Shown here one piece after another: positions 11,289 through 64,000 of a DNA stretch of 64,000 bases (its first letter is position 1; the number at the start of each line of letters is the position of its first letter). The position numbers and the translations under genes are program-made. The notes below the pieces were generated by a model, which was not told the DNA's origin, made no database searches, and saw only the letters and a list, made by a program, of their open reading frames with translations. This stretch comes from Lepidodermella squamata (Eukaryota; Animalia; Gastrotricha), in the NCBI GenBank assembly GCA_047495785.1, contig JBLDXI010000054.1, positions 1,488,001-1,552,000 on the forward strand. Direction: 5' to 3'.

Positions 11289-13875
11289 ATGGATTTGAAA
11301 TGGAATATTTTGATCTTTTTCAACCTGCTCACTGCAGCTGTTGCTGCGAAGTTACCGCTTTCTGCCCCATTAACGGGCAGAATATTCTCATCTAGCTACA
11401 ATTCTAGCGATGCATCTCGCTCAGTTTTGAGCCTGATGGCATCGTACAACTACGGCGGACCCGTCCAGCCATTAGGACCCGCTTGCTCTGAGGCCATTCG
11501 ACTTGTACTGGACAGCGTGAAAAAGCTCAACATACTACCCAAACACGAACTTGCAGTTGATATTGTCGATGACATGGTAAGTAGATAACTTGAGATATCC
11601 GATTAGACTAAAATCCTTGGAACTTCAGTTTTCCAGGCCAATTGGAGTTGTTAAGGTTCTGACGCAACTCCAGCTGAATGATCAAATCACAGACCGGTTG
11701 CCCCTAACATTGGGTTCGTTCTGCTCAGCAAATTACCTCACAGGCCAAATAATGCAGCATTTCAACTACGTTGGGCTGACAATGACGTCGGCTCAAAGTG
11801 AACTTCTAATGCAAAGATCGCGTTACGCAAACTACTTCGTCCTATTGCCCCAGTTGAGCTCTAGTTACGATGCTCTAACTAGCTTCCTCGACATGATGAA
11901 CTGGCGGAAAATTGCCATACTTTCAGAGGGTAGCGACTTTTTCGGCAGTATTGAAGCTGAATTCATCGCAAACTTTGAACGGGGAGAGAATGGGTCTAAA
12001 GTCTTAGCTGCTTTCAAGATTCCCTACGTTCTTGGAACACTTCCCGAGCCGCAATTTGTCGAGCAAGCTGTTGTGGATTTGAAAAAAGTGAAGCCGAGAA
12101 TTATACTCCTGAACGCAGTAACTACTGCTAGAGCAGCTTGCTATCTTCATAAGTACAAGTTGTACGGGCCTAATATCGTAATTCTAACCCTTACATCCAC
12201 CGTTTTTGCCCCGAATGACCCGTTTCGCTTCACGGAGTGGTGTACAGAGAAAATGCTGGAGGAAGTCCTCGAAAGCGTGATTGCGTTCAGCTACACGAGT
12301 TTGATGACTCTTGGGCAAAGTAAGGATGTCGACTCTCTCGGTAACTCGGGGACTGATCTAGACAAATGGCTCGATTTTAGAATTCAGAACCCGGAATTCT
12401 TCCCTACCTACACACACAATCGCCACTTTTGCTACGACACTACTATGGCTGGGGTTTTGGTTCTCAACCGAACTGAAGCACTACTACAAACAAGTAAGAT
12501 TAAAAATGAGGTAGTCTAGCGATTATTTTACTAACATTCGTTTCAAGGGAATCAAACTCTGTCACAGTGGGTAACAAATGGTAAGCTATTCAAGGATGAA
12601 GGGGCAGAAATAGCGGAAGTGATGAAAGAAGCGTTGTACTCAGCGAGATTTCGAACTAAAGTTGGAGACATCGGATTCGAGAGGAATACTTCCTTGAATT
12701 CGGGCGGAAATCCTATTCAAGGTTTCGTGCAGTATAGGCGAGACAACGCGACTTCTAAAGTTCGTTTGTACCCTATTTGCATATATTACTCTAGCAGCCG
12801 CAGGTTGGAATGTAATTTGAACTCGTTGAAATGGCGAACTGCATCCGGCAATGCCCCATTGGACCATGTCGTTAAAGTAATATCTGAATCTCCTTTGTTG
12901 GACTTTTCGGCTTATATCTCAGTCACGGTGATCTCCGTCTTAGTGCTATTCCTACTGATGTTCATCGCCATTAGATGGGAGCTCGGAATGACGAAAATTC
13001 GAAAGAATTCCGTACGAATTGACGAATTTATTCTGATTGGAGATGCTGTTGCACTCTGTTTCATCCTATTCCAGCCTCTGGAATGGAATAAGTACTTCAG
13101 AGCTTTATCATACACTGCATATTGCTGCTTATTTGTCGGCTTAGCTATTATGCTGTATGGTTTGACGGCGAAACTCGAGTTTCTTGCCAGAACGCTGAAG
13201 AAATCCACGACTTCACGATTCATAACATCTTCAAGTCGACCTTCATTAAGTACCGGCAATTTGAGGCTTACAGCTATATTACTAAGTCTTTTAGGGATCC
13301 TTCTGGTACTTCTGATGCTACTTCTGATGCTTACATGGTTCTTAGTTTCCCCTCCCGCAGTTTCTGTGAAATCAGTGGAAGATGCTTTTATAACTTCAGA
13401 TGACAGCGTAGAATTTTTGACGCTGGAATTCAGCCTAGTTTTGATCAACTCTTGGGTTTCGGAATCGTTAATCGCTATAATTTGCGCTATATATGGCCTA
13501 ATGGTATTGCGAGGTGGCTTTCTGGCATATAGCCTCAGATCTGTAAGTGTTGAAGTAGTTGGCTTGCATTAATTAATTCTTTTATCACAGAAACCTCCCT
13601 TGAAAGTCAGCAACGTAAAGCTGAGTGTGATTTGCTTCTACAGCACGGTGGTGCTTTTGACCTGTGGCGCTCTAGTAGCAGGAGCCATTTTCGAGGGAGG
13701 CGCTCAACGGCGTATCGCGTTATCAGTTATGATTCTCGCTTGTGCTTTGATAAATTTGGCCTTCCTGTTTCTCCCGCAGTTAAAGAAAGAAATTGCTATC
13801 TCCAAGAGCACGGTAACAACAGCTTTATTCATTGGTTCAAAATTCAATAGTAACGAGCTCAATAGAAATCACTGA
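11289..13875 (+). CDS. GABA-B-like class C GPCR; exons 11289-11576, 11629-12493, 12548-13542, 13591-13875 (~810 aa)
   Basis: Signal peptide, Venus-flytrap motifs (ILPKHELAV, GSFCS, RYANYF, MNWRKIAIL, PRIILL), WRTASGNAPLD stalk and 7TM. Three 48-54-bp GT-AG introns keep frame. Confidence 0.85.
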
Positions 13876-44844: not shown

Positions 44845-45912
44845 TCAAGAGTTAATGATCTTTACGAAAATTGAAGAGTAGAAAACGACCAAAACAACGA
44901 GAAATACTACAAACACGACGAAATCGATGACCAGAAAAGCGCGAAATGTAGCCGTTCGAAATCGCCACTTCGCAGTCGCCTGTTCGGGATACAGCGTGAT
45001 GAATGAACACATGACAGCCGCGTAGACGGTACAAGCCATTTGAAACACAACTTGTCCAAAGATGAAGTAAGTCGCAATGATCGGCTCGCTTGTCTTGGGC
45101 AGATTCGCCTGCATTTCAGACTGCAGAACGAACATTGCAAGCATTAGAGTGGCTGCGAAAGCAGCTCTGTCTGGGCATTCTGCTGGCAAAAAGAAGCTAC
45201 ACAGGCTGAGTATTGTAAGGATGAAACTAGGTGCGAACAAATTATTAATCACATAACTCGGATCGCGCTTGATAGTTAAGCAGAAGAATGCTGTTGCGTT
45301 TTTCGGGCCAACTCGAGTTGTATATGATTCTAGTTTCCAAAGTGAGCTTCCTGGCATAGCATCGGCTATTGTTTCCTCCACTGGAAATACCAAAGTCCCT
45401 AGTACAACATACTGAGAAATTCCCAACAGCATTATTTTGATACAACACTCCTGGGTGTCGAACGGGAATCGCCAAAAATGCATCGGGCAATACGAGCTGA
45501 GAGGGCCGTATATTTGATTCGTATAAAATCCCTCTTGTACAAGCACCATAACAGATCTACTTATTGCCTCTCCCTTCATAGCTGGGTTATCTGGGCTATT
45601 TCGGTGAATGAAAGTCGGCCACCAAATGCGATCGTTGCCATTGGGTAGGAACATTTGTTTAACATTGCCCGACTGCTGTATCAAGTCAGCTGAGTTGTTA
45701 GACGTGCATGCATCTTCCCAAGCAAAGACGACCAAGGCAAATACTGAGAAAACCTCTTCGACATCGTCGATTTTCAGCACTCTATCAATGGCAAGTACCA
45801 CAGTGATATTGGTCGGTTTGTCGTAGATTTCGCTAGGCGAGTTGACCAGTGGATCTATGTGACACGTTGCAAGCAGCAAATCAAGCAAGGCAATAGTTCC
45901 CTTGTTAGGCAT
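44845..45912 (-). CDS. Cys-loop channel subunit, type B, 355 aa
   Basis: CPMHFWRFPFDTQEC, 4 TM. ATG chosen by alignment to paralogues. Confidence 0.92.
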   Translation of the reverse strand: MPNKGTIALLDLLLATCHIDPLVNSPSEIYDKPTNITVVLAIDRVLKIDDVEEVFSVFALVVFAWEDACTSNNSADLIQQSGNVKQMFLPNGNDRIWWPTFIHRNSPDNPAMKGEAISRSVMVLVQEGFYTNQIYGPLSSYCPMHFWRFPFDTQECCIKIMLLGISQYVVLGTLVFPVEETIADAMPGSSLWKLESYTTRVGPKNATAFFCLTIKRDPSYVINNLFAPSFILTILSLCSFFLPAECPDRAAFAATLMLAMFVLQSEMQANLPKTSEPIIATYFIFGQVVFQMACTVYAAVMCSFITLYPEQATAKWRFRTATFRAFLVIDFVVFVVFLVVLVVFYSSIFVKIINS

Positions 45913-46091
45913 GTCTACGTTCCTATATACAGCCTGAAGTTGAAATGCGACAGCAATTTCTGCATAACTGTGTTTGCTATGCTCCATGTTATTTGCTTTG
46001 TAAATAAACATTTCGATCGGATGTTGGATCAATTTCGATTTTAATCACTTTGAGATCTCAACCATTATCATGTGGTGCTGTGTGTGTTTTT

Positions 46092-47825: not shown

Positions 47826-48555
47826 TATTTTTGAAAATTCTAAAAAAAAATGAAAAAATTCTAATTTAGGGATTTTGCGTTTTTTCTGATCATTAAGGGA
47901 GCTTTTGGCGGCGCTTTTGATTAGAGGGCCAAGAAAATTTTTATTACGTGGCCATGCGTGTACCTGGCACGCGCAAACAAGGCTTTTTTATTCACTGTGC
48001 GCAATAAAATGCTGCGTAATAAAATACGCGCAGTCGCCGCGCTAAACTTTTCTACTATAAAATAATGTTATATATTATATACGGCGTAAATTTTATAATT
48101 TACAATGATGTATATTTTTGTGGTTTTAGTACCAATTTTGAGGTTGAAAGTGCCGCTTGTTTTTGCGCGCACACTGTCAGATCTTTTTACTATGTATTAC
48201 TTTTTACTTTTATCAAGTTTTTTTAATAATTTTTAGAAACATGCGATAAACAAAATCTTGAAAATAAATAATAATATATTTTTACGCTATCAAATGCGAC
48301 TGCTTTTGTGTATAAATGATAAATTGTGGGTAATGGTCATTAAGCATTCTATGATCATCTCTAAAAAGCTGTATTTATGATTCATCAGTCGACAGGTGGA
48401 TGATTGATGTAGAATAAACGCGTCATTTTGTTTATTTACAAGTCACATCAGTGAAATTATGATATTTACCGGCAATTATGAGCTGAGCTCATCGTTTTTA
48501 CTCCTCACATGATTATAAAAATAAAAATAAAAAATAAAAAAAATGAAAAATTGTG

Positions 48556-48611
48556 CGTCGCCAGTAGGATTCGAACCTACGCGCGGAAACCGCATCTGAT
48601 TTCGAGTCAAA
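48556..48611 (-). tRNA. tRNA-Ser(CGA), 3' portion only (anticodon arm to discriminator)
   Basis: Minus strand reads TTTGA-CT-CGA-AA-TCAGA, long variable arm GCGGTTTCCGC, GTAGG-TTCGAAT-CCTAC, TGGCGAC-G, then an oligo-T terminator. D-arm and 5' acceptor strand are absent. Confidence 0.85.
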
Positions 48612-50333
48612 TTTGAGTGTCCCTTTTTAACCGTGTTTTTTTGCCGTCATCTTTACCGTGCAGCTGCCGTAGTTTTACGAGCTCTCAAAAACTAATTTTT
48701 CTTCGATTTATGTTTGCCGTGTTTGCCATACTTGTTCGTTGGATTTTCCAATACTTCAAGCAGATCCTAGAGAAAAACTTATCATTTTGTGTGTAAAAGT
48801 TTCTGTTTTCGCAGAAAAACTAGCAGAAAACGAGCGTCTCTTTGTGTAACACGGTAAAAAACGCTACAGTAAAGCTGGAAACCAGTCACTTCGCGAAATT
48901 GGCACAGTTTTTTTCATGAAACTTGGGAAATTCGGCGTTTTGCCACCCGAGACCCAAAGTTAACTGCCAGGTGAAAATATTTCTTCGTCGCCGTTGAACA
49001 AACTTACGATTTTCCGTTATTTTCACTGCGAAGTGAGAAGTAGTGAACGAAAGTGAACGAAATTCGATGCCTCGACCTCTAGTTTTTTCGCGGAAAATTC
49101 CCTGGCTCGAAAAACTGCCTTCTACCTTTCCGGATCAAAGTGTTTTTATTTATCATAAAATTTCTCGTTTTTTCCCTAATTTTTCCTAATTATTTACCTG
49201 GATCCTGAAAATAACCGAATTTTTATCGTTTTCAGCCTGAACCATCAAGAATATAAGAATGCCAACAAAATTCGATAATTTAGATATTTCGTAAAAGCCA
49301 AATTTGTAATGACTGAAAATTGTCGTTCTAAATAAAAGCTGAAATAGGGCAAAGTCATTGTTATTATGGCGCTCGATTGTTGTGCACAATCGGGGTGCCT
49401 CGGGGTGTTGCGTAATCACGCCATGCTTCAATGTGGCTTTTTGGTTCATGCAAATCATCTTATTTTTGTTTTTAATTCCAAAACATCAATGACCTATTTA
49501 GTAAGAATTTTTCGTCCGACCTCAATTTCGTATTTTGAGCTTCATCAATCCCCGCCGCCTTGCTACCAGGTGTGTCGATCATACAATCTGGACAAGTCAA
49601 ATATTTATCGAATTTTCAAGGTAATTTTGAAATTAATTCCATTTTCTTTAATTTACCCGCAATTTTTGAAGGTTTGTCCCGCGAATCGATTTAGCTGTCG
49701 AACCAGTCTTAACCAGTCGGTCAACAAATCGTAACGGTATCGATGAAAAATTGACAGGTAGGTATTTTCGTGTTTAATTAATTTCAATTATTAATTGTTA
49801 TTTATTTCCATAGTTTCTTCGGGCCTGTCGCAGTGGCGGTTTTCTGCGAAGTCAAAGCAGCTATTCGAGCATGGCGCCTCGTGAAACAGCATCCACAATT
49901 AACTTGACAATATTTCATTATTGCAATTGATCCATTTTTGATGAATAAAATGAAACTGGCATCAAAGGATTTCCGTTTTAAACTGTCTTTTTTGAAGCAG
50001 TGCAAGCCACGTTTTTTCAATAATAAAAGTAAAAACTGCCCGAAGTGAAAGTTCTATTGGCGACGAGCAAGTGACTGCGCAATATAGAAAACATTTCTCA
50101 CAGCGAAACTCTCACCGCGGTTCCGCTGGCCCAGCTCCGCAAAAAACTACACTTTCAACAGAATACTGTCCTCAGACAAACTCTCGCTAATTTGCATCTT
50201 TAGTTTATTTTATTTAGGCAGTTAGAAGGCCTGAAATTGTCGCTCAGGGTATACCGCAATTTTTTCTTGTCGTGGTTTTACGAAGTTTTGCCATGAAAGC
50301 CTCGTAAAACTTACGGTAAACTTTCGTATTACG

Positions 50334-51076
50334 GAAAAATGCAAAATGCAAAATGTAAAATTGTAGTGGGAAAAATGCAAAATGCAAAATGTAAAATTGT
50401 AGTGGGAAAAATGCAAAATGCAAAATGTAAAATTGTAGTGGGAAAAATGCAAAATGCAAAATGTAAAATTGTAGTGGGAAAAATGCAAAATGCAAAATGT
50501 AAAATTGTAGTGGGAAAAATGCAAAATGCAAAATGTAAAATTGTAGTGGGAAAAATGCAAAATGCAAAATGTAAAATTGTAGTGGGAAAAATGCAAAATG
50601 CAAAATGTAAAATTGTAGTGGGAAAAATGCAAAATGCAAAATGTAAAATTGTAGTGGGAAAAATGCAAAATGCAAAATGTAAAATTGTAGTGGGAAAAAT
50701 GCAAAATGCAAAATGTAAAATTGTAGTGGGAAAAATGCAAAATGCAAAATGTAAAATTGTAGTGGGAAAAATGCAAAATGCAAAATGTAAAATTGTAGTG
50801 GGAAAAATGCAAAATGCAAAATGTAAAATTGTAGTGGGAAAAATGCAAAATGCAAAATGTAAAATTGTAGTGGGAAAAATGCAAAATGCAAAATGTAAAA
50901 TTGTAGTGGGAAAAATGCAAAATGCAAAATGTAAAATTGTAGTGGGAAAAATGCAAAATGCAAAATGTAAAATTGTAGTGGGAAAAATGCAAAATGCAAA
51001 ATGTAAAATTGTAGTGGGAAAAATGCAAAATGCAAAATGTAAAATTGTAGTGGGAAAAATGCAAAATGCAAAATGT
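50334..51076. repeat. Perfect 36-bp tandem array, ~20.6 copies (GAAAAATGCAAAATGCAAAATGTAAAATTGTAGTGG)
   Basis: Directly visible; identical units with an internal 7-bp AAAATG(C/T) subrepeat and no spacers. Confidence 0.97.
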
Positions 51077-51240
51077 CGGGGAGGCTTGAAAGCCTATATA
51101 ATTGCATTTTGCAAAGTGCAAAAAGAAATGAGCAACGTGCATTAATTGCATTTATGCAAAATGCAAAAAGTCAAAAAAGCTCGGTGGTAAGCCGAAATGG
51201 TTAGTAAAAAGTGTTTATAATAAAAAAAAATATATAAAAC

Positions 51241-51311
51241 GCGCCATCATCGCGCATCGAACCATTGATCATTGGCCTTGATAGTGTAATAAATCCACCA
51301 CTCGGCCATCG
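51241..51311 (-). other. Degenerate tRNA-derived (SINE-like) Pol III promoter segment
   Basis: A-box TGGCCGAGTGG and B-box-like GGTTCGATGC at tRNA-like spacing; no cloverleaf. Confidence 0.45.
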
Positions 51312-53930
51312 TAATATTGATAATAATCAAATAAAAATTGTAAACAATATAAAGTGTAACATCCAATCTCCGTCACACCTATTATCATCAATTTCGGATA
51401 TTATCTCGACACGTTTTTTTGTATAACCATGCGATGATATACATGATATACAAAATATCTAATGTAAAACTTTCGATTAAAAAACTTTTCGCGAAAATAT
51501 GGGGTCGTCGCCCTACAAATTATTAGATATTTAAAAAAAAATATTATTTTATAAAATCGTGATTTGTAGATACCTGTTGATAGATTACAATAGAGGCTAA
51601 AGGCGTCGCGTTGCTTTTGAAAGGGGTCGCACTCGAAATAATGATCACCAATATAATAAAAACTTAACAGCCCCCCTAGTGAAAAAAATCCTTATTGCAC
51701 CTCTAAAATACCCTATTATACACTATAATAGCACTAAAATACCTAAAAAGTCAGGATTTTTTCACTAGGGCCCTTACAAACAACGCGACAAAGGTATACC
51801 GTATAACGGCATATTCGGAATATTAATTTTTTCATCGTCGAAAATGCATTGTGAAAAATGTAGGTAGAAAATCAGCTCGTATAATATAAGTCTAAAAATA
51901 ATATAAATTTCGAATTTACCACCAGGATTTTCGTGGAACCGTAAAAGACTGAGAATCGTCGTTAGGGTTTAAAGGACAGCTGACGGCTGGCGATAGGCTT
52001 CCGGGGCCGACAGATCGGTCGCGAACAACTTGCTTTCACCCAGCAAACAGTAACAACAATAAATATATTTACCGGATGCTTATATATATATATATATATG
52101 TGTTCAGTCTGTCAATTTCGAAAACTGCCATGGAAATATTAAAACTTAATTTCTTGAAACGGCTTTCAATGAATAAAAAAGACATCGCCAATGCAATATC
52201 CTATTTCAGTTCTTTGAGTGTGTTACTAAAATAACCATTCGTAACATGAAAATGTTTATCATGACATGATACAAAATTTGATACTTCCATTATTTTCCTT
52301 TAAATAAACATCACGTGTAATGCATATTTTAGGCCATAGTGATTCTCAAACCCTGTTTTTCCGGCCACAAGCTGCCGGCGAGGCCCACTTTTGCGGCCGG
52401 CAGAGTTCCGCCTATCTCATGCATTGCGAGCAGCCGGGCGGCTCTTTCGAGGCGAACAGCCCATGGTTTCACATAATTTAGGCAATCATTTGGGAGCATC
52501 CGCCGGTTCATTCATTGCTTATTACAAACCATGTTGTATTTTATTGCCAAAGATGTGCGCGTGACCTAGATTCAGCGTAACACCGCCTTAATTACGGCGT
52601 GCGGTCACCGCTATTCGAATAGACAGCACGTGTCAAAACATAATTCGAATTTTAATACCTCCGATTATTTTATAGTAACCCTTATTTTTAACGCCCCTTA
52701 TCGCACAAAAATTTGCCGAAGCGGATGTTAAAACTTCGACAGCCGCAAATAATGTTGTAACAAAATGTTTACACTGCGAGGAATGTAATAAATGATCTTT
52801 TATCGACAGTGAATTACAATTTTTAGGTTTATTACTCGCCCGGATAGTAATTGCTTTTATTAAACAGCAAGTTTATACTATTTCTGACAGTAACTTTTAT
52901 TGGCGATTTCTCTATACGATGATGCCGATTTTTCTTTAGCCGATTTTCGGATTTCTAATTTGGGTTATTTCCCAAAAAATTACAAAAAAAATGTGAGCCG
53001 CGACGAAACCTAAGCCGCTATTAAAAAACGGCCGTATACAGTATTAACTGAAATTATGACCAAAATTTTAGTTGGGCTCGTTTTTTTTAAGTTTTTTTTA
53101 TATTTTATTTACGTCGGACCTGCCTGAAATTTTCTTTAGAATTAGAAGGGGGGTCGTGCGTGACATCTCCTTATCGTCGATACCGCTGATGAATTTTGCG
53201 TCGCGACATTTCCGCCGAAGCCAGCAACTATTGCGCCCACGACGTTTCAGAAACGAATAATTATTTTTCATATTTCGCGATAATCCCATCAGGGCGAATT
53301 TAACGCGGTGATTTTTTTAAATAAAACAAGACTTGTTGCTCGCGCCGTTAATTTGGCGACGCCAGCGCTGTTTAAATTAATTTAATTCCTGCGCTTCTAA
53401 CCAAGAGGCCATATGGCTTAATCGATCAGAAGCTCGCTGAATACATGAAAGACCAATGCCATAGCCGCCAATTCCACGTCGACACGGGCTATCACGCCAA
53501 CGACCACCCCTCTCTGTAACCGCCCCATTACTTTTCGCTAGAATTTTTCGTTGAAAATGAACTTAACTGTTTGCGTCAAGTTGAATTTCTCTGGTAACGG
53601 CGAGTTATTGCCATAATTCCATCCTAAGAAAATTGTCGAATAAACCCTTACGATCCCAAAACCTAAAAATTTCTCAAAAATTATTCTTTATAACAAAAAT
53701 TCGTAAAAACATTTTTGCCATTTATTTCATCGCACTAAACCCTTCTAACGAGAATGTCAGACAAGTTTTCAAAGACTAGATAACTATCGATTGGGAAAAA
53801 ATTCCTCATGTAGGCTTGTGATTTCGAATGGCTCTTGAAACATTGCGAATTATTGGAACATTTACGTTTTGGAAAAAATGAGTATTGAACCCTTCTTTTT
53901 TTATTATCGAATATTTTATAGTTTTAAAAA

Positions 53931-55585
53931 ATGAGTGTTGAAACTTTCACGTGCAGATCCTTGACTGTTATATCGTATTCGAACCCGAGGTTTCAGACAG
54001 GCAGATATCTGGTGAATGCAATCGTATCTACAGTCGACGAGCCGGAAGTACGTATGGCAGCCGAGTTTAATAGCGTTGACTTGAGTCGCTACGACGATAT
54101 TGACTTTCTCTCGACATTGGAATTTCCTCGACTCCTGAGCCCCAAGCAGCGGACAATTGTCAATACATGGGCGCCACGGTCTGACTTTCCAGATTATTAT
54201 GTCGATCAATCACTCGATCTCGAAAATTTGCGAATTAGTTTGCCGTCCTATTTGGGTCGGAGCCATTTTTTTCCTATAAATCGAAACTGGGAAGCCGAAA
54301 ATTTGGAACTGCTTTTCGCATCAAATCGACCAAGAAAAGATGTGTCTGCGCACGTCATTATCACCCGTGTTGGAGTCACCAGAGACTGGTCACCGGACAT
54401 CGTTGAAAGGCCCTTATTCCTAACAATGGCGCGATTTAAGGATGTGATATCTGATTTCGAAGGAGGTAGGAATGATAGGCGGGGTGAACCTTAATTTTAA
54501 CTCAGATTTAAGCTTAATTTCACTCAGATTTACCTCTGATTTAAGCGACTACCGAATTTTTTGATTTTATCAATTTTAATAAATTTAGTATTAATTTACG
54601 ATTTTTCTTCTCACAATTTTTATGTTTTTATTAACGTTGAAAAATAATCTGAGGTGAAGCTATTTTCATATAGGCTCATCAACCCCACGGTTTCACTTGA
54701 TTTATTATATTTTGGAAAAGCCGCATGAACGCAAATTTGGAGAAAAATTACTGCGTATTATAATAATTTTTTTTAAATATTTCAGCCCCGATTTTTATCT
54801 CTAAAATATAATTTCGGAAGTATCAATGGGCCTAAAGCCTTCATTCAGAGCTTTCAAGGTTGCCCTGATCAATCAGCATAATTTAAAATAAATCATCATT
54901 GAATTTAGCGTAAAATTCTGTTTAAAATTCTGTTTATAACTCATCACTGCGGAATTCATGCATTGCCTTAATTTCGAAGAAATATTCTAAAAGTGACCTT
55001 ATGCTTAACTGTAATTAGGTTCCGCGACATGCCGATTTCGTTCCGCTAAAAGTTATTCTGATAATATAAAATGATGATAAAAGTTTACGATTTGTGTTTA
55101 TAGATTTCAAACTATGGGGTCATGAATGGGCTCGCTTCGCGAAGCGCGTGAAAAACTGTCATTTGTTACTGCGCGATGTGGAATATCTGTACGAAGACAA
55201 GTATAAGCGTAGCTACCTCGTTACTGGCGGTAGAACTACGTACTCACTTCTCTACAACGACGCCACCATGGAAGCCATCGCTGTTAATGAACGAGATCTC
55301 GCCGTTGATGTCCGTAAACGCGCACTGGGAAACGCTCCCGACGCCTCATCAGTTGCTGCAAAGCATCGCCTGGTCGACCCTCGAGGTTTGGTCGTTACTT
55401 CAGATCCCGCAGGCCCTGTTGATGAACATCTCCCTAGCAATCGCCGGATCGAACCCGAACCAGTACCCGGCCCTTCTAGCCGTCGCCAACCAATATCGCC
55501 GCCAATTATTATCCCGCACGGATTAGGAAATCTGCCTACCGTCGCCATGCATCTAAGGGAAGCCATTCGGCAGACGAAAAATTAA
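53931..55585 (+). CDS. Uncharacterised protein, probable OB-fold; exons 53931-54465 and 55104-55585 (~338 aa)
   Basis: Phase-1 intron keeps frame. VSAHVIITRVG...ARFKDVISDFEGDFKLWGHEWA...LLLRDV...YLVTGGRTTY resembles RPA/SSB OB strands. Pro-rich tail. Confidence 0.55.
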
Positions 55586-55759
55586 TGACGTGGGTCGAAA
55601 GCTATTAAAGCTCGTGAACATGCGTAAAAGTGATAAGATGATGTGATTTTGTTGTTGTTTTAGTTTGCTGCTTTTACTGACCAATGATATTGTCGAGATG
55701 GAATTGTGCTGAAATGAAGCTCTATAACTGTTCACAATTTTTTTTTCACAATTTTTTAG

Positions 55760-58700
55760 ATGGAAATTAGTTCAAATTTAGCTGCCCTGGAAGTTCTGTT
55801 GTGTCTGTATTCCGATAGCGACAACGCCAGCACCCTCGAGGCGAAATTGGCTCAGCTTGGCGCGAAATCGACATACGACGAGTAAGAATTTGAAAATACT
55901 ACTGCGCGTCCCATAAGTTGCACAACTATTTCCTAATTTGGAATTTTTTGTTGGAAATTTAATTAAATTGCATTGAACCTATCGAGTGAAAACTCCAACT
56001 TTTATCCGCGATTCAACCGAAGACATACAAAAATGTACAGGAATAAACGCGGGAAAAACCCCGATGTTTACTTGATTACTATTTCCGTGATTTTTTGAAT
56101 TTTTCTAAAATTTTACTGGCCGTGAGATGTGACTCTCTTACATTTCACAGTTTCTAAATTCTTTTTTCCGTATACAGTGAAAGTTGTCTTAACCGGACTA
56201 AGGTCGCGCCAGGCAAAATCGTACGGTTTAGAGAAAGTCCGAATTATTTTAAACCGGACTGAGTCCGCTATAAGAAATACCAAGTGAAATTCGTGGAATT
56301 TTTAAGTTTTACAATCCAAATAACAGTTTTTGAGTACGGAGTACTAATTAATATAAATAATAAAAATATTAAGCTATATTCGCAATAATTGGGAAGTTGA
56401 TTTTTTTCAAAATTTTGAGGCTACAGCCGTCAGGCAGGTGCTGGCACTTTCTTCAAAATTATATAGAAAATTGGCCTTTTTATTGCATAAACCGGACTTC
56501 GAGCCCTAATCCGTCCGGTTTATACCACAGTCCGGTTTAGACAATAAAATTATAATGTCCACGCTTTCGGATCGAGCCACCCGAAATCGTCCGGTTTAGA
56601 GAAAGTCCGGTTTAGAGAAAGTCCGGTTTAGACCGGTCCGGTTTAAACAACTTTCACTGTACTTTCTTGCTTGTGTTACTTAGAGACACTTGATTTAGCA
56701 TCATCTCGAGCCGGTTGAAAAATATGGGCTGAAAATCCGAAAAAAGGATCTCCCGCAATTTTTACATTATTTATAAAAAAATTCATTTAAAATTACAATT
56801 AGCGACACCCTTTAAACGCAACTCGTCGACGTCAATACTTGCCAAGTCCAAGCCTCTAGCATTTTCGATCTGGCAGATTTTTTTCGAATTAAGGTTACTA
56901 ATAACATTGTTGAGTCAGAAGTCGTAGCCTATCCTGAAATATATATGAAAAGATAACTTCCAATTTTAAACTATTTTTTTAGGACTCTCCAGTGCGTTCT
57001 GTTCGAAGCCGGCTTCCTTATTGCACCTGCTGGCGATTTTGTCCTGGCCTATAAGGACGAAATATTTGCTTTCGGCGCTGTTGAGAATGGGTCTACCGTC
57101 GCAATGACGATTTCTATAAAAGACGCTATACACAAAATCGAGGGAACAATTGGCTTTCTCAGGGACGCGTTCCAAACTGATGGAGCTCGTTTCTGCCATG
57201 TAAGTCATAGGATTTATGTTTTATTGTAAATTTAGGTTAATTTTCAAATATGATTCTACAGGTGAATATTGACCCAACCCGTAGTCGTTTAGCCGCCGAG
57301 GTATGGATGGCCCGATTCCTACGATGCGGCAACGGAGAAAGCGGTTTACTCCAGCTCATCTCTGATGTCGAGGAATTTGGAAATTCCCGTGCCGTCGCTG
57401 AGGCCTCGGAAAGCCGTGGCCTACACTTCACAGCAGCCCTGATATACTCTCGCTTAGACTATCCCTTCGAAGCGCTTCGCAATTTTTACCGGTGTCGCGA
57501 TGCTATCGATCTTTCCAGCCTCGTAATAACTCTTATTTTCTATATTAATCAATTTAATGGGAATATTATAGATTCCAGAGTACATTGGATATGAAGTTGT
57601 CAGGGAACTCGCCAGAGTCGACCCGGAATTTAAGCAAGTCGCATCGCAAATCAATTTTCCCGCTCAACAACCCGTCCCGCTGAAGGTGAGCATGGTTTTA
57701 AATATTTCAATTTGGTTTTTACTCTGAGCGGAACCGAAAGTGCCTATTGCGGAACCAAATTTTCAGAAATAAATTCGTCCAAAAATGGATTTCCATTTTC
57801 CATACTTTCTGGAATTCCCCGATAAATGTGAAAAAATTCGAATTATTGATCATAAAATTGTCCGTGATTTTCAGTAAGAAGCCTGCAATCATTTTACGAA
57901 GAACACATGATCATGAAGAAAAATTATTGGAAAAATGACATCTTTTGATAATTTGCGTTTGGTGCCGCTACAGCCAATTTCGGTTCCGCAACAGGCAAAT
58001 TCGGTTCCGCTAAAAGATATTCCGTTTTAATTTAATTTTAATTTCTTTTTTTTTCTTGAAATTGTTTTTTCGCTCAATTCGTGCGATAGCAGGCCTATTT
58101 TTTTTAATTCCGCGATTCTGCGCATATGGCTATGGCTGGTTGCTTATGAGCTAATATACAATATGAAAATCGATGAAAAATATTACAAGCTTTATAAATC
58201 GACTCGGGTCACATTTTATTCAACATCAAATTCACTTTTTTCAACATCAAATTACTTTTTCTATCATCAAACTCTTTTTTCAACAGCAAATTGCGATTTC
58301 ATAATTTTTGCGATCAACACTCATCAAAGCCCTTGATGATGACCAGTCCGGAAAAATAACAGAAAATTTGGGCGAAGAATGTAGTTTATTGCTGTCGAAC
58401 CCGTTCATAAAATTATGGAAAATTGAGTTAGCTGTAATTTTGCAAAGTTACTGACAAATATTTGATTTTTGGTCAAAAAATTGAATTTTTAAATATTTAA
58501 ATATTAAATGAGAATAATTTGACGATTCTCATTTTTGCGAAGACAATGATTCAAATGAGTGAAATTAGTCCGGGCCCTTCAAGGTTAAGCTGCCGGAAGG
58601 TTTTACGCCGTTGCGCTCCACTGAATAGCCGCATGCGCTCCCTGTCTTCCGGGCGGGTATTGCCAATGTCGATAGATTTTCAACTCGCACCCTAGGCATG

Positions 58701-61700
58701 TGTCATACCAGCGAAGAATACCGCATCGGTAGGTAACACTTGTTCGCCCAAAAAATTCAGGCATTTAAGGCGACTTTCCTGCGCAGCACATATCTTCTGC
58801 ACGCGCAAACAAATCGCACGCCAAAAATCAATTGTTAAATCAATTGTACCCCGCAATTATCACCCGAGGTCATACATAACACTTAAAACCCACAACTTCA
58901 CCGCGAAAGTATATTATTCCTTATGAATTGTTAATTTCTGAAGTTTGCTGTCGAAAAAAGAGTTTGATGATAGAAAAAGTAAATTTGATGTTAAAAAAAA
59001 TATTTTCCATCGACTCCATCGAGCTAAGATTTGCTAATTTTCGCGACGGTAAAAGCGGCTTATAAGCGGCGTTGCCATTCATCATGAATCATTGTTACAT
59101 TTATTCGTAAAAATTAAAATTAATCGTAGAAATATTCAAGTAATTTGATGGACACTTGAAATGCCGCATTTTACCGTGTAAGAAATTCCGCGCGATTATT
59201 TTATTCCCGCGTTTTGAAGAAACTTCAAATTATTCGCCGATCAAAGACAAAATGTCGTAATCGATCGGCCGCGAATTAAAAAAATATCGCGAAAATTACC
59301 ACGCTTACAATATTCGACGTACGAACTTCAATAGAACCAGAATCCTCACTCATTAGTAGCAGATACGGAATCATTCCTAACTATCATAATTTGCCATCAT
59401 CTGCCTTGGCGATGGTGCACTCCTCTGATTTTTTTCATGTCCGGCGCTGGAAGAAAAACTGCAAAAAACAACGCTAATTTGAATAATCGTAATTTTTTTC
59501 CGCTGAAGTATTGGTTCGATTGGTTCGTAGTTCGTAGTATAACGAAATTGAATGCGGTTACTGCGCGAATAAAAAATTAACGATTTAATATTTTTTGAAA
59601 CCTAAGCCTGAAGTCTTAGCCGCTGTTCCAAGGGAATAATGTCTTTTTAATTTCTTAAAAAAGGAACAAAATTAATGACTAAAGATGAAGTACGATTCCC
59701 TCGAATAAGAATATTTTTTTGCACCTGCCACTGAGCAACATCCAGTGGCGAAAAATCGGAAGCCTGTTATTTTATTTTCTATCAATTATTATTAATTATT
59801 TTCCGTTATTTTTTTAATGTTATTTTATCTAACATCTATTTCTAAAACAGGCTTCGAAAATCGCTGATATCAATTCGCTGCATAACCGCGAGGCGATGTC
59901 TACCATCGCTGATACTCGAACGCCCTCTATTGCCAGTGTTGTTCCTGTTCCTTCTGATGTAGCCGGAAATGAACAAATGGATTGCATGGCTGTGGGTGGA
60001 GATCTGTTCGAGCTTGCTCGAGATCCTCAACGGCAACAACCCGAACAGACCAGTCCTCATCGTGAACAGGCCGACGAGAACTTACCTCGGTCAAGGAGTG
60101 CTTCATCTAGCGGCGAAGAAATGGATTCTGATAATGAAAATGAATCGGATGGTGAATCTGAGCAGCAGATCAATGAAATTTCGATAACTGAAGTCGCTGC
60201 TTCATCCGCTGACCCGGTGAGTATAGCTTCTTTATATTTAATTCAATAAAATTGCTTTTCTCTTACAGAATCATATCGCGAACCTGACCCCGAAGATCAC
60301 ACCAGTGGATTACCTGAGATTCGTCGCGATGTCGTGCGGCCGAATGTTCCCCGAGGGCAAGAAAACGCTAGATAGCTTTAATGTACTGGTTACGAAGTCG
60401 GGTGGTGACGTTGGACGGGCGCTGGACGCCATGTTTCTCGACCTTGGACACGCCACCGCTGATTTTCCATCTTCGAACATGGCGCCCAAGGAGTGCGTAG
60501 CGGTCGTTGCATTCTCCGTTTCAAGGGGTGACATTATATGCTGGTCGCCTAGTCGCGAGAGGAATGGCTATGCGACTTACACCGCATATCCCGTTCACTC
60601 CATCTCGAATAAATGTGCGAATTCCAACGATTTGCTCGAGGCTATAACGGCTTTTGCGGTACAAGGTTACACAATAATCTTGGTCGTGCCAACATTTCCT
60701 AGCGACGTTCCCCGTTTGGGTCTTAATTTCGAGTCCTTTCGGCCGACTGATAAATTTACCGAGAACCGAAACTCGAAGAGACTTCATGATACGAGAGAGG
60801 CCGTAGCGTCTGCGGACGCCAAGAGAAGCGTTGAGTTTCTGCTTGCTAGCAAACAACTTCACGCCCTCGATGACGCCCTGCGTCAAGAATTCGGACCCGT
60901 GGACGGCTGTATTTACTGGGTGTTCGCTAAACAAAAAGGGTCCAGCGCTACCATTGAGGAGCTTCTCATTGTCGTTCAATTCCCAGATAGAACTTCGGCG
61001 TCTTCCTGGATGGATAAAACCGATGGGGTTTTGAAGATCGGCAATCTTATGGTGCATTCTTCGTGGTTAGACCGCCAGTTCCACCGGCCGGGCTCTTATT
61101 GCCTGATCCGTGATGCCTTTCGAGAACACGGCGTCTACGATGAGAAAAGTAACGCTTGGGCTCCATACGACCCTTCGCGTTTAAACGTTTACCGCCATTG
61201 GTTGATCGAGCTAGTCCCGTCTCTACTAAGTCCTGAACTCGATGACAAGGAATTGGATGAATTTGAAAACTTTTGTAGCCGGTCGATGATCGCTCAATTC
61301 TTACCAAGGTCAGTGAAGCATTCTAGCCTCCTACGGTGGCTGAGACAACAGCTTCCATCCACAACGCATCTGAAACTGAAGCTATACAACGACAACTTAT
61401 GTACAACAGCTTATGCTACCATCGAGTTCGATAATCGGCGTGAAATGCTCATTTCTATGCCCAATTTGATGCTGGAAGCCAAAATCAGTGACACGTTCGC
61501 GAAAAATTCTAGAATCGTGCTAGTCGAGGACATTGCAAAAGAAATTATGGCTTTCGAATCGCCTGAAAATGACGTGATTTGTGGATATTATATACTCGAC
61601 CTGCCTCTCCATGCCAGCCTTGAATTTCTTCGACGAATTATTCCCGAAAAGCGCGTCATCATCACCGACCTTCCGGGCTTCAAAACTAAAGCCGCATTTG

Positions 61701-62854
61701 TTTGTTGCGATTCACCGGCCGACCGCGATGAGGCCATTGCATCTCTGTCATCTGAAATTAAAGGATGTCGTATCATTCCGTATTGCGAAGATGCGGCTGT
61801 TATTCGCGATTTCTCAGACGGCCTGAAAAATGGGCGTTATAAGCGTCTTGTTTACGGTGCAGCGGGTTCGAAGGATATCAATGATGGCAGCTGCAGTGAA
61901 ACCGACGAAGAAGAAGATAATCGCCTGCCCGCAGCCGCTAATGTTTCGGATGCCTTTATTTTTCGCTTCCGTTCAACAACAATGTTGGAATCGATTGATA
62001 ATCCAGCCTCGTACGCAGCGCCCTTACATGATGCCTTGACAGCTTATGTTGTTTTCGAGTGCCTTCGAGGACAAATGGCCGTCGATTCGCTGAGCAGCAA
62101 TTGGTTTCTAAGCAATCTGTTCAATTATTTCAGCGGTCGTTTCGACCTAGCCACCTACGCCTTCCTTTCTCACATTTATGGCAAGGCATTTGTACGTGGC
62201 CATTGGAAGTACAGAAGAGCGACGTTGCAATACACACGAATGCGTAGCAATGTTCCACTTTGCGAAATGTCAACGGCGATGCATTGCCGCTACATATTAT
62301 TTCAATATTCCTTGAAAAATATGATGGCCTCCCGTGACACCAAAGCGATCAAGACCACTCTGACGGCGATGAGATGTTTGCATGAGACACGGCGCTGTCT
62401 TGGAAAAGAAATTGTACCTGCTATTGAATTTTTCGACCGTAGCAACAACGTTCTCGTGGGCCTATGTCATCGGCAATGTGCGAATTGCGTCGCCGGGAGG
62501 ATGGATCCGCAGTTTTGCGATACCATCAATTACTTGTCTCTGCTTCTCAATAATTTCATTTCAATCTCGGCGGCCTATATCTTGCTGATGCGGGATGGAT
62601 CTGGATCTTTTTACTGTGGAAGAACCACCGTTATCAGAACACGCTGGGCCAGGCATTGTAGCTTATTCATCGCCGCTCCTAATGATCCCAGTTTAGGCGA
62701 TCGCGTGCATGCTAAACTGGCCAAGTACAACTCTTGTAACCTGCCGGCGAGGCCCTTCCACGGGCTAATGTGGCGCATCGCCGAGGGCTCGAAGCTGCCG
62801 GATTTCGAAAGCTTCCTTCATCAACGGTTCCCTACTTGCCTTGGTATTAACTAA
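55760..62854 (+). CDS. ~1221-aa protein: helical repeat - acidic linker - 3 RRM-like domains - Zn knuckle - GIY-YIG endonuclease; exons 55760-55881, 56983-57199, 57262-57522, 57572-57685, 59851-60216, 60269-62854
   Basis: All five GT-AG introns are phase-consistent. RRM-like segments at ~60830-61080, 61286-61510 and 61580-61790. CHRQCANC, then AYILL..SFYCGRTTVIRTRWARH...FESFLHQRFPTCLGIN. Confidence 0.72.
56175..56659. mobile_element. pogo/Tigger-like MITE (family of 22768..23375), intronic
   Basis: TIRs CAGTGAAAGTTGT.TTAACCGGAC / GTCCGGTTTAAACAACTTTCACTG, TA TSD. Confidence 0.9.
57728..58010. mobile_element. MITE of the 617..783 family, intronic
   Basis: Long imperfect TIRs GCGGAACCGAAAGTGCCTATTGCGGAACC / GGTTCCGCAACAGGCAAATTCGGTTCCGC; TGA and TAA flanks. 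Confidence 0.75.
58215..59000. repeat. Foldback/MITE-like element with ~55-bp inverted repeats
   Basis: AACATCAAATTACTTTTTCTATCATCAAACTCTTTTTCAACAGCAAA at ~58243-58290 is mirrored at ~58944-58995. Termini and TSD unresolved. Confidence 0.6.
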
Positions 62855-64000
62855 TTATTTCTGGCTGTTGTGAAAATACCGCAATTATTGCTACATTGTC
62901 GAGTTGACTCATTTTTTCGACTTATTGACCTGAAATCTTCGTTATTAGCTGCCCACGTTATGCGTAAAACTCATAATTGAGCTGTTTATTATTTGGAGCC
63001 TTTCGTCGTTTTATTTTACTGCTGATACTGTCTTAAATCTTGATTTGTATATTTTTTTCATTCCATAAATGTCTCTCATTGCTATAAAAATAGCCGCGGG
63101 AATTTGAAAAAAAACTGCGAAGCTACACTTTCCAATTGTTGGAAACCATGCTCAAAAACATGTGAATATTTCAGACTTGTCAGTTACAATGATAACAGTT
63201 CACCTTTGTAAACGCACCCGGTTCTACTATCTAGCATCTTATCACTCGTCATTCTCCTTTTACTTGACGTTTTATAAATGTGAAGGCTTTGTTTCTCGGT
63301 TAATATTTCCATATAAACCAATTATGAAACCGAAAGAAAATATTCGCTCTGGTGTTGTGATAAGTGAGGCCAAATAAAAGTTTTCGGATGGAAATTTTCT
63401 TGTCTATTCAAGTGGATTTTTCACGGCCGTACAGCAGTCCTTCGATTATTTTCCTAATTCCAAAATGTCTGTAACTGGAAAAAATTCCGAAATAGTGTGT
63501 GTATGCGATTTCCAAAAAATCGTGAGTTTTTTTTCGAAATTTGCTCTCTGTTCGCTGTTGTCGATTGACTCGAAGTAGCGAAATTCGTCGAATCAGTTGT
63601 AGGCGATTAAAAAAGGACAGATGTCGTTTTCCAAAGTCGATAATCTAGTCTCTGGCGCTGTTCTACGAGAGTAAATAATTTTTATTATAAAATTGGATAT
63701 ATATTGGATATTATAAAACAGGAAAACAATTAATTAAAAACGAATTTTTGTGAGCCAAGCGCGCCGATTTTGTGGCATTACGCCTCTGAAAATAAGAAAA
63801 CGAGGATTCTAAGCTACCGTACAGCCCTTATTTTTCGCGCACCAAATATTATCGCGCAGATGCCTATTTTCACCCGGTTTAATTCGCGCGTTATATTTTC
63901 ACGCGGACATCTGTTGTCAGACTTGCCAATTTTTCCAATTTTTTAAATTTTATCAATGATTTTTCCGATTTTTTAAATTTTATCAATCATTTCTTTCGAT

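Follow-up and report, generated by a model that had tools for sequence, protein, structure and literature searches.

Dada DNA transposons are the known class of mobile elements that target tRNA and snRNA genes (Kojima and Jurka 2013, PMC3706591; Kojima 2022, PMC8869645). They lack terminal inverted repeats (TIRs), reach 11 kb, and in several lineages lie within the anticodon arm in the orientation opposite to the tRNA (PMC3706591, PMC8869645). The locus described here is a tRNA-Ser(CGA) gene of the gastrotrich Lepidodermella squamata that is split by a 15,511-bp insert; its left part lies in the window, which is the whole 64,000-nt stretch analysed, and its right end just beyond. Like Dada, the insert interrupts the anticodon arm of a multicopy tRNA gene, measures several kb, has no TIRs and codes opposite to the tRNA. 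Unlike Dada, whose duplications are 6-7 bp long, it is flanked by a 3-bp duplication (extending the overlap yields 4/7 matches), and a Pfam scan of 38 ORFs inside it showed no transposase, of the Dada-type DDE kind or any other. Dada elements also occur as several copies at one site of a small-RNA gene family, whereas the insert exists as one copy with unique ends and without a second insertion in the same target.

Among other DNA transposons, the PIF/Harbinger and CACTA superfamilies generate 3-bp target-site duplications, and CACTA elements may be as large as the 15.5-kb insert and may carry host DNA. The 3-bp duplication is common to both superfamilies and the insert, but PIF/Harbinger elements have TIRs, a TWA duplication and a DDE_Tnp_4 transposase, in contrast to an insert with no TIR, a TCA duplication and no transposase, and the matched termini of CACTA elements (CACTA or GG-type) are likewise missing. 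Site-specific non-LTR and Penelope-like retroelements are characterised by a reverse transcriptase and a 3' poly(A) or simple-repeat tail, neither of which was found in the insert. Integrase-driven tRNA islands and Cryptons rely on an integrase or a tyrosine recombinase, of which the insert shows none, and are marked by a longer att-type repeat through which the tRNA is made whole again, whereas here the repeat is 3 nt long and the tRNA is not restored. The insert matches no known transposon class. Another known route, for chromosomal or extrachromosomal DNA alike, is end-joining capture at a double-strand break. The insert resembles the products of such capture in consisting of single-copy, ordinary-looking DNA devoid of element hallmarks, in its short junction homologies and in its location in a tRNA gene, a fragile site, but its clean 3-nt duplication and the absence of target deletions are neater than what end joining usually leaves.

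The 3' piece of the tRNA-Ser(CGA) gene lies on the minus strand at 48555-48609 and corresponds to tRNA positions 29-83, from the last 3 nt of the 5' anticodon-stem strand through the anticodon loop, variable arm, T arm and 3' acceptor strand to one trailer base. It is identical at 55/55 positions to an intact tRNA-Ser(CGA) gene (L011:1473-1555), was also aligned with four array genes of the same tRNA, and is followed on the tRNA strand by a T-run terminator at ~48540-48550, as the original prediction had it. That prediction had also placed a sharp end at 48611 in a small palindrome: a 10-bp palindrome, TCAAATTTGA, does straddle the junction 48609/48610, but identity to the tRNA breaks off two bases earlier than proposed, at 48609, within the 5' strand of the anticodon stem. 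The 5' piece, said to be missing from the window, is indeed not there (only chance matches of at most 13 nt were found), and a downstream search recovered it 121 bp past the window end, at L021:121-151 (64121-64151 in coordinates extended beyond the window). It comprises tRNA positions 1-31 on the minus strand, in the same orientation as the 3' piece, and is identical to an array gene at 31/31 positions. This confirms that a single large insertion has its left junction at 48609/48610 and its far end beyond 64000.

Positions 29-31 (TGA on the tRNA strand) are present in both pieces, and this 3-nt overlap is a candidate for the target-site duplication that had been sought: its left copy, TCA on the plus strand, occupies 48607-48609, and its right copy L021:121-123 (extended 64121-64123). 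Removing the insert together with one copy of this repeat gives an empty-site model that is an intact tRNA-Ser(CGA), 82/82 identical to an array gene. Neither ARAGORN nor Rfam at its gathering score called a tRNA in the window, where Rfam at a lax threshold gave only a sub-threshold partial match of 15.3 bits, and ARAGORN found no other tRNA in the 264 kb surrounding the split gene. Since 15.5 kb now separate the A box from the B box, the split gene is dead. Each tRNA is present in hundreds of copies in this genome, the tRNA-Ser genes inspected elsewhere are intact, and with hundreds of other tRNA-Ser copies available the loss of this one is therefore harmless.

The insert thus delimited extends from 48610 to extended position 64120 (ending at L021:120), equivalent to C54:1536610-1552120, and is a real, well-bounded single insertion. 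Its GC content is 0.392, versus 0.422 and 0.410 in the flanks. To its left lies a ligand-gated ion-channel receptor gene (44845-46032), in agreement with the receptor genes noted originally on that side. No terminal inverted or direct repeats were detected between the two 200-bp ends of the insert, no hairpin was found when both ends were folded on both strands (z-scores -0.35 to 0.95), and neither junction carries a poly(A) or other tail. With up to 3 mismatches allowed, neither the 26-nt left terminus nor the 28-nt right terminus recurs anywhere in the 121-Mb assembly, and the assembly contains neither a donor nor a second copy of the single-copy backbone of the insert. A Pfam scan of 38 ORFs of at least 45 aa on both strands returned sub-threshold noise only, with no recognisable domain of a transposase, integrase, reverse transcriptase or Rep protein. 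A 24-nt right-flank pattern retrieved no empty-site or flank match from metagenome contigs.

About one third of the insert consists of small dispersed repeats; the remainder is single-copy and contains two orphan genes, both spliced. At 11 bp inside the left junction begins a dispersed, MITE-like repeat of ~250 bp (48621-48872); it is 82% identical to two parts of locus L007, with an 800-bp TIR element nested inside the copy at that locus, and other partial copies exist elsewhere in the genome. It is followed on the plus strand by a copy of a longer dispersed element (48870-50250), 86-95% identical to copies at L002-L006 and L008 and diverging by 2.2% from the 6-copy consensus. The other copies extend further upstream while the 3' terminus is common to all, so that this copy is 5'-truncated in a LINE-like pattern, and it sits internally in the insert, not at a terminus. 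The perfect minisatellite noted originally is borne out by Tandem Repeats Finder (50333-51076; 36 bp, 20.7 copies, 100% match). Further repeats comprise a small dispersed repeat of ~150 bp (52335-52491), a repeat with TIRs (58204-59010), and those at 51674-51770, 53151-53296, 56172-56665, 63435-63957 and L021:30-98. An old MITE copy (54810-55068) shares 75-77% identity with five other copies, which resemble one another more closely (85-91%).

This old MITE lies in the intron of the first orphan gene (53931-55585, plus strand), whose exons, 53931-54466 and 55104-55585, are joined in frame across a GT-AG intron (54467-55103; junction placed by hand). The original prediction of an OB-fold-like gene holds in so far as the nearest ESM-Atlas clusters of the second exon are all POT1/RPA/MEIOB-type (0.86-0.90), which makes the putative OB fold a lead-level assignment. 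In homology searches, which were run exon by exon for both spliced gene models, this exon had one paralog in the genome (C34:460145, 54% amino acid identity), and exon 1 had none. The second gene, also on the plus strand, is represented by its last two exons (59896-60216 and 60269-62854), in frame across a 52-bp GT-AG intron, and likely has more exons upstream, e.g., at 57250-57594. Its last exon has an open frame of ~860 aa with a weakly GIY-YIG-like C-terminus: the predicted GIY-YIG identity is matched by one Atlas cluster at 0.90, but the 849-aa ORF reaches only E=0.021 and 15.6 bits against Pfam PF01541, below the cut-off of 22.6. A single-sequence AlphaFold model of the C-terminal 253 aa was unusable (pLDDT 38), and the ORF has no relatives in 1.84 billion proteins by full HMMER, nor did a word search give any. 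Within the genome, near-copies of the large protein on C24 are decayed by stop codons (63-80% amino acid identity), and diverged open copies occur on other contigs; the paralogous loci of the large ORF and the OB gene are C24:4126383-4131396, C24:3799884-3800433, C33:2744508-2746871, C148:4962-5714 and 11871-12623, C13:2817613-2818508, C26:1348979-1349784 and C34:460145-460519.

We propose, at a probability of roughly 0.5, that the locus records the recent single relocation of a pre-existing block by cut-and-paste or break repair. One insertion of a single block disrupted a solitary minus-strand tRNA-Ser(CGA) gene where the 5' strand of its anticodon stem meets the loop; the cut was presumably staggered by 3 nt and then filled in, which would have left the flanking TGA repeat. 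The block would first have resided elsewhere, gathering its repeats there, and would then have arrived recently and as one piece, either through cut-and-paste by an enzyme supplied in trans that uses ends without recognisable features, or as a freed chromosomal fragment that was captured when the tRNA gene suffered a double-strand break. The pristine state of the tRNA halves next to a heavily decayed internal MITE suggests that the block is older than its arrival, and it probably already existed before landing in the tRNA gene. If the MITE, with at least 10% divergence, had entered after the split, the chance of 0 changes in the 86 tRNA letters would be ~1e-4 by our own arithmetic, which presumes that the halves drift neutrally and that none of the hundreds of tRNA-Ser copies has corrected them through gene conversion. 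The lack of a donor copy in the assembly fits a non-duplicative move. Two observations count against plain relocation: transposases leave a clean 3-nt duplication more typically than end joining does, and the occurrence of both decayed and open copies of the large orphan protein looks transposon-like.

Alternatively, though we consider it unlikely, the insert could be a copy of a new kind of mobile element with the OB-fold-like and GIY-YIG-tailed proteins as its machinery: the nuclease would cut the anticodon stem of tRNA-Ser with a stagger, and the entire unit would go in at that point. The insertion is clean and has a 3-nt duplication, its large protein belongs to a dispersed family, and the pair are the sole intact genes of the block, both oriented opposite to the tRNA. 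Against this, an insertion with these ends was found once, the single paralog of the OB exon lies on a contig where no nuclease paralog was detected, the GIY-YIG assignment is sub-threshold, much of the block is non-coding single-copy DNA, and ~400 other tRNA-Ser targets are available that appear unoccupied among those seen. That the two genes form the machinery of an undescribed class of eukaryotic mobile elements, operating without a reverse transcriptase, DDE transposase, tyrosine recombinase or HUH Rep, is a doubtful proposition.

It is also improbable that the insert is a decayed or non-autonomous Helitron-like rolling-circle element on the minus strand, inserted behind TCTGA in the anticodon stem and itself ending in TTTGA, in which case the apparent duplication would be mimicry by the element's end. 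The absence of TIRs is in line with such an element, and target and element end agree in 4/5 letters, an agreement that a 3-nt duplication plus chance explains equally well. Helitrons encode a Rep (HUH) protein and a helicase, though, whereas Pfam finds no trace of either in the insert; their copies share termini and a 3'-end hairpin, whereas folding revealed no hairpin here and the termini are unique in the genome; and their copy-and-paste mode should have left a donor copy, of which the assembly has none.

Stepwise nesting, in which a small element with a 3-bp duplication (e.g., of Harbinger type) entered the tRNA gene first and the rest, including a mobile gene cassette, was nested in it later, appears more doubtful still. 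The 3-bp duplication and the MITE-like repeats situated 11 and 22 bp inside the two ends speak in its favour. Under such a history, though, the tRNA halves would predate the contents of the insert, yet they show 0/86 changes while the internal MITE has diverged by at least 10%; moreover, the outermost 26 and 28 nt fit no repeat family, and ~10 kb of single-copy DNA is not explicable by nested repeats.

Membership in the Dada superfamily is largely refuted and now very improbable: the shared anticodon-arm position, orientation, kilobase size and lack of TIRs are outweighed by the short duplication, the single copy and the missing DDE transposase, the only large ORF being the one without a relative in 1.84 billion proteins. 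An assembly artefact is highly improbable, for although the junctions are known from the assembly alone, a misjoin would not yield tRNA halves that complement each other perfectly, together with two exact junctions and a duplication of 3 nt.

The original prediction went further and saw in the locus a cargo element that targets tRNA genes. This part was not supported, as the insert has one copy, unique termini and no transposase, integrase or reverse transcriptase found in it, and copies of the junction-adjacent repeats, checked for neighbouring split tRNA genes as had been suggested, adjoin no tRNA pieces. No sign was seen that the tRNA gene was a chosen target: with hundreds of copies per tRNA in the genome, a single hit of this kind is statistically uninformative.

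The broken tRNA gene shows its exact empty site and thereby offers a base-resolved view, before and after, of the arrival of 15.5 kb of DNA in an animal genome. The locus also provides the first positional evidence of movement for a block carrying this pair of OB-like and GIY-YIG-like genes. If the pair drives the move, a new kind of eukaryotic mobile element would be defined, with its exact ends, its 3-nt duplication and its target in the tRNA anticodon stem given for the first time. If the pair is not the driver, the locus would represent a clean natural case of a large genomic block relocated into a harmless multicopy target.

A single 15,511-bp insertion, from 48610 to 64120 in coordinates extended past the end of the window, splits a tRNA-Ser(CGA) gene with a duplication of 3 nt. 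On the minus strand, 48555-48609 is identical at 55/55 letters to positions 29-83 of tRNA-Ser(CGA), as compared with an intact gene from a tRNA array of the same genome (L011:1473-1555). This 3' piece spans the last three letters of the anticodon-stem 5' strand, the CGA anticodon loop, the long variable arm, the T arm and the 3' acceptor strand, with a T-run on its 3' side. No tRNA is called in the window by ARAGORN, or by Rfam at the gathering score (a lax Rfam threshold gives a partial, sub-threshold match), and comparison with the array gene across the window recovered no 5' part, in agreement with the original prediction. Querying the 200 kb downstream of the window (L021-L040) with the array gene located this missing half at 64121-64151 (L021:121-151), also on the minus strand, where tRNA positions 1-31 match at 31/31 letters. 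The two pieces thus share one orientation, are collinear and overlap at positions 29-31 (TGA, or TCA when read on the plus strand). The plus strand passes from ...GAGTCA to AATTTGAGTG... at the left junction and from ...GCAACCCC to TCAGACCCC... at the right one. Scripted removal of 48610-64120 together with one copy of the repeat restores an intact tRNA-Ser(CGA) according to ARAGORN, identical to the array gene at 82/82 letters. Since ARAGORN finds zero tRNA genes in the 264 kb examined around it, the split gene is solitary and the match of its halves is not due to chance. The large insertion predicted to begin here and to end past 64000 is therefore delimited on both sides, at 48609/48610 and 64120.

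The original prediction also held that the insertion was targeted to tRNA genes. In the assembly searched (121 Mb, 151 contigs), multi-gene tRNA cassettes form very large tandem arrays, for instance on contigs C9 (~5.55-5.65 Mb) and C10 (~2.38-2.54 Mb), as read in L010-L020 (C10 from 2.40 Mb), with periods of ~3.5 and ~4.5 kb. The array units carry 15-16 different tRNA genes per 3 kb read, three tRNA-Ser isoacceptors among them; tRNA-Ser(CGA) is part of the units, and a first-pass count yielded 424 candidates matching the 3' part of tRNA-Ser. Each tRNA is present in hundreds of copies, which makes these genes a sizeable neutral target, in which one hit cannot show preference.

The tRNA identity stops at 48609/48610 within a perfect 10-bp palindrome, TCAAATTTGA, that straddles the left junction (48600-48616), and its outer arm re-forms TTTGA, which nearly copies TCTGA, the strand of the anticodon stem lost from the 5' side. 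Chance, hairpin-opening nucleotides and end mimicry are candidate readings of this palindrome. Short stretches of flanking sequence also recur beside each junction, GAGT...GAGT at the left one and ACCCC...ACCCC at the right one, and palindrome and echoes could be end-joining footprints or chance. The two ends of the insert share no inverted or direct repeats, neither shows, on the plus or the minus strand, a more stable fold than shuffled sequence, and both junctions lack a tail of poly(A) or simple repeats. The terminal 26 nt at the left end and 28 nt at the right end have no other genome match at up to 3 mismatches, and a search of metagenome contigs with the right flank returned no match.

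Repeats make up ~1/3 of the insert, the remainder being single-copy in the assembly, and, at 0.392, its GC content lies near the 0.422 and 0.410 of the flanking DNA. The first 11 bp from the left end are unique and are followed by a MITE-like repeat of ~250 bp (48621-48872), which matches two parts of L007 at 82% identity, a stretch in which an ~800-bp element (L007:605-1401) with 45-nt TIRs (96% identical) is nested in the 250-bp repeat and carries a D-arm-like tRNA motif (L007:1220-1243). Next to it, 48870-50250 is a 1.38-kb piece of a dispersed element with LINE-like 5' truncation: the other copies (L002-L006, L008) extend further upstream, the 3' end being common to all and the 5' truncation variable. 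The copy in the insert differs by 2.2% from the six-copy consensus, and Pfam finds no domain in the ORFs of this 3' part. Just beyond the element's 3' end in L002, a by-eye translation resembles a reverse-transcriptase motif, and that copy may thus sit inside another retroelement. Copies of the repeats nearest the left junction are not found beside tRNA pieces. The perfect minisatellite noticed originally is borne out, with 20.7 mismatch-free copies of a 36-bp unit (50333-51076), implying very recent expansion or ongoing homogenisation. Small dispersed repeats occupy 51674-51770, 52335-52491, 53151-53296, 54810-55068 (a MITE), 56172-56665, 58204-59010 (with TIRs), 63435-63957 and 64030-64098.

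Two genes, queried exon by exon as spliced models, are encoded by the plus strand and so run against the direction of the tRNA. The first consists of ORFs 53931-54494 and 55094-55585, joined in frame through a GT-AG intron (54467-55103) that contains the MITE. Pfam gives no match, and the first exon has no paralog in the genome; the second has one (C34:460145, 54% amino acid identity) and, as a lead only, may be OB-fold-like, its nearest ESM-Atlas clusters all being OB-fold ssDNA-binding proteins (POT1, RPA, MEIOB, BRCA2 OB2; 0.86-0.90). The second gene (exons 59896-60216 and 60269-62854, whose frames connect over a GT-AG intron of 52 bp) probably has further exons upstream. Its 849-aa ORF shows a sub-threshold Pfam match to GIY-YIG (residues 758-786, E=0.021) and one ESM-Atlas GIY-YIG cluster at 0.90; the single-sequence AlphaFold model of its C-terminus is unusable (pLDDT 38), and a word search and 1.84 billion representative proteins yielded no relative. 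Within the genome, decayed close copies are found at C24:4126383-4127605 (63-80% amino acid identity, stop codons) and C24:3799884, and diverged ones, some fully open, at C33:2744508-2746871 (26% identity, 871 aa open), twice on C148, and on C13, C26 and C24 (C24:897835). At the nucleotide level, C24:4126379-4131396 holds part of the second gene in decayed and rearranged form (88-92% identity, 784-bp internal deletion), in which the piece matching 56962-57643 lies downstream of that matching 60301-62265, the former being upstream in the window. A further 67 bp inside the large ORF (62466-62532) are 94% identical to C3:2278709-2278774.

A new mobile element with the OB-like and GIY-YIG-like pair as its machinery would fit the genes present and the family of dispersed, in part decayed copies of the large ORF, but it has a single insertion and a domain match below threshold as its basis, and we consider it unlikely. 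Among 38 ORFs of at least 45 aa on both strands of the insert, Pfam detects no transposase, integrase, reverse transcriptase, Rep or helicase. A rolling-circle, Helitron-like element, for which the tRNA-strand target ending in TCTGA and the insert ending in TTTGA could be cited, is likewise improbable, since Rep, an end hairpin and a donor copy are all lacking and neither end occurs elsewhere in the genome. Dada transposons, named in the original prediction, resemble the insert in lacking TIRs, in their anticodon-arm site and in their orientation opposite to the tRNA (PMC3706591, PMC8869645), but duplication length (3 nt here), transposase and copy number rule against them.

The order of events bears on the remaining readings. 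The intronic MITE shares 75-77% identity with five relatives and 74-80% with all other listed copies, the five being 85-91% identical among themselves, and is therefore at least ~10% diverged from its source; far more diverged than its family average, it offers the block a useful internal clock. If its insertion had followed the split, the dead tRNA halves should have drifted too, yet they show 0 changes in 86 letters, for which we calculate a chance of ~1e-4 at 10% divergence. Judging from these sequences, the block very probably held the intronic MITE before landing in the tRNA gene, and probably also other repeats, those 83-90% identical to their relatives; the LINE-like fragment (2.2%) could have entered before or after the landing. 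In principle, the many tRNA-Ser copies could keep the halves clean through gene conversion, but the 3' trailer of the split gene already differs from the array trailer. Stepwise nesting is contradicted by this age order, with clean tRNA halves around a diverged MITE. The duplicated 3 nt point to a staggered cut of the same length in the tRNA gene, and as no second copy of the backbone exists, either the move was non-duplicative or the donor has been lost. We favor, at a probability of about one half, the reading that a pre-existing block was relocated once, recently and non-duplicatively, into this solitary tRNA gene.
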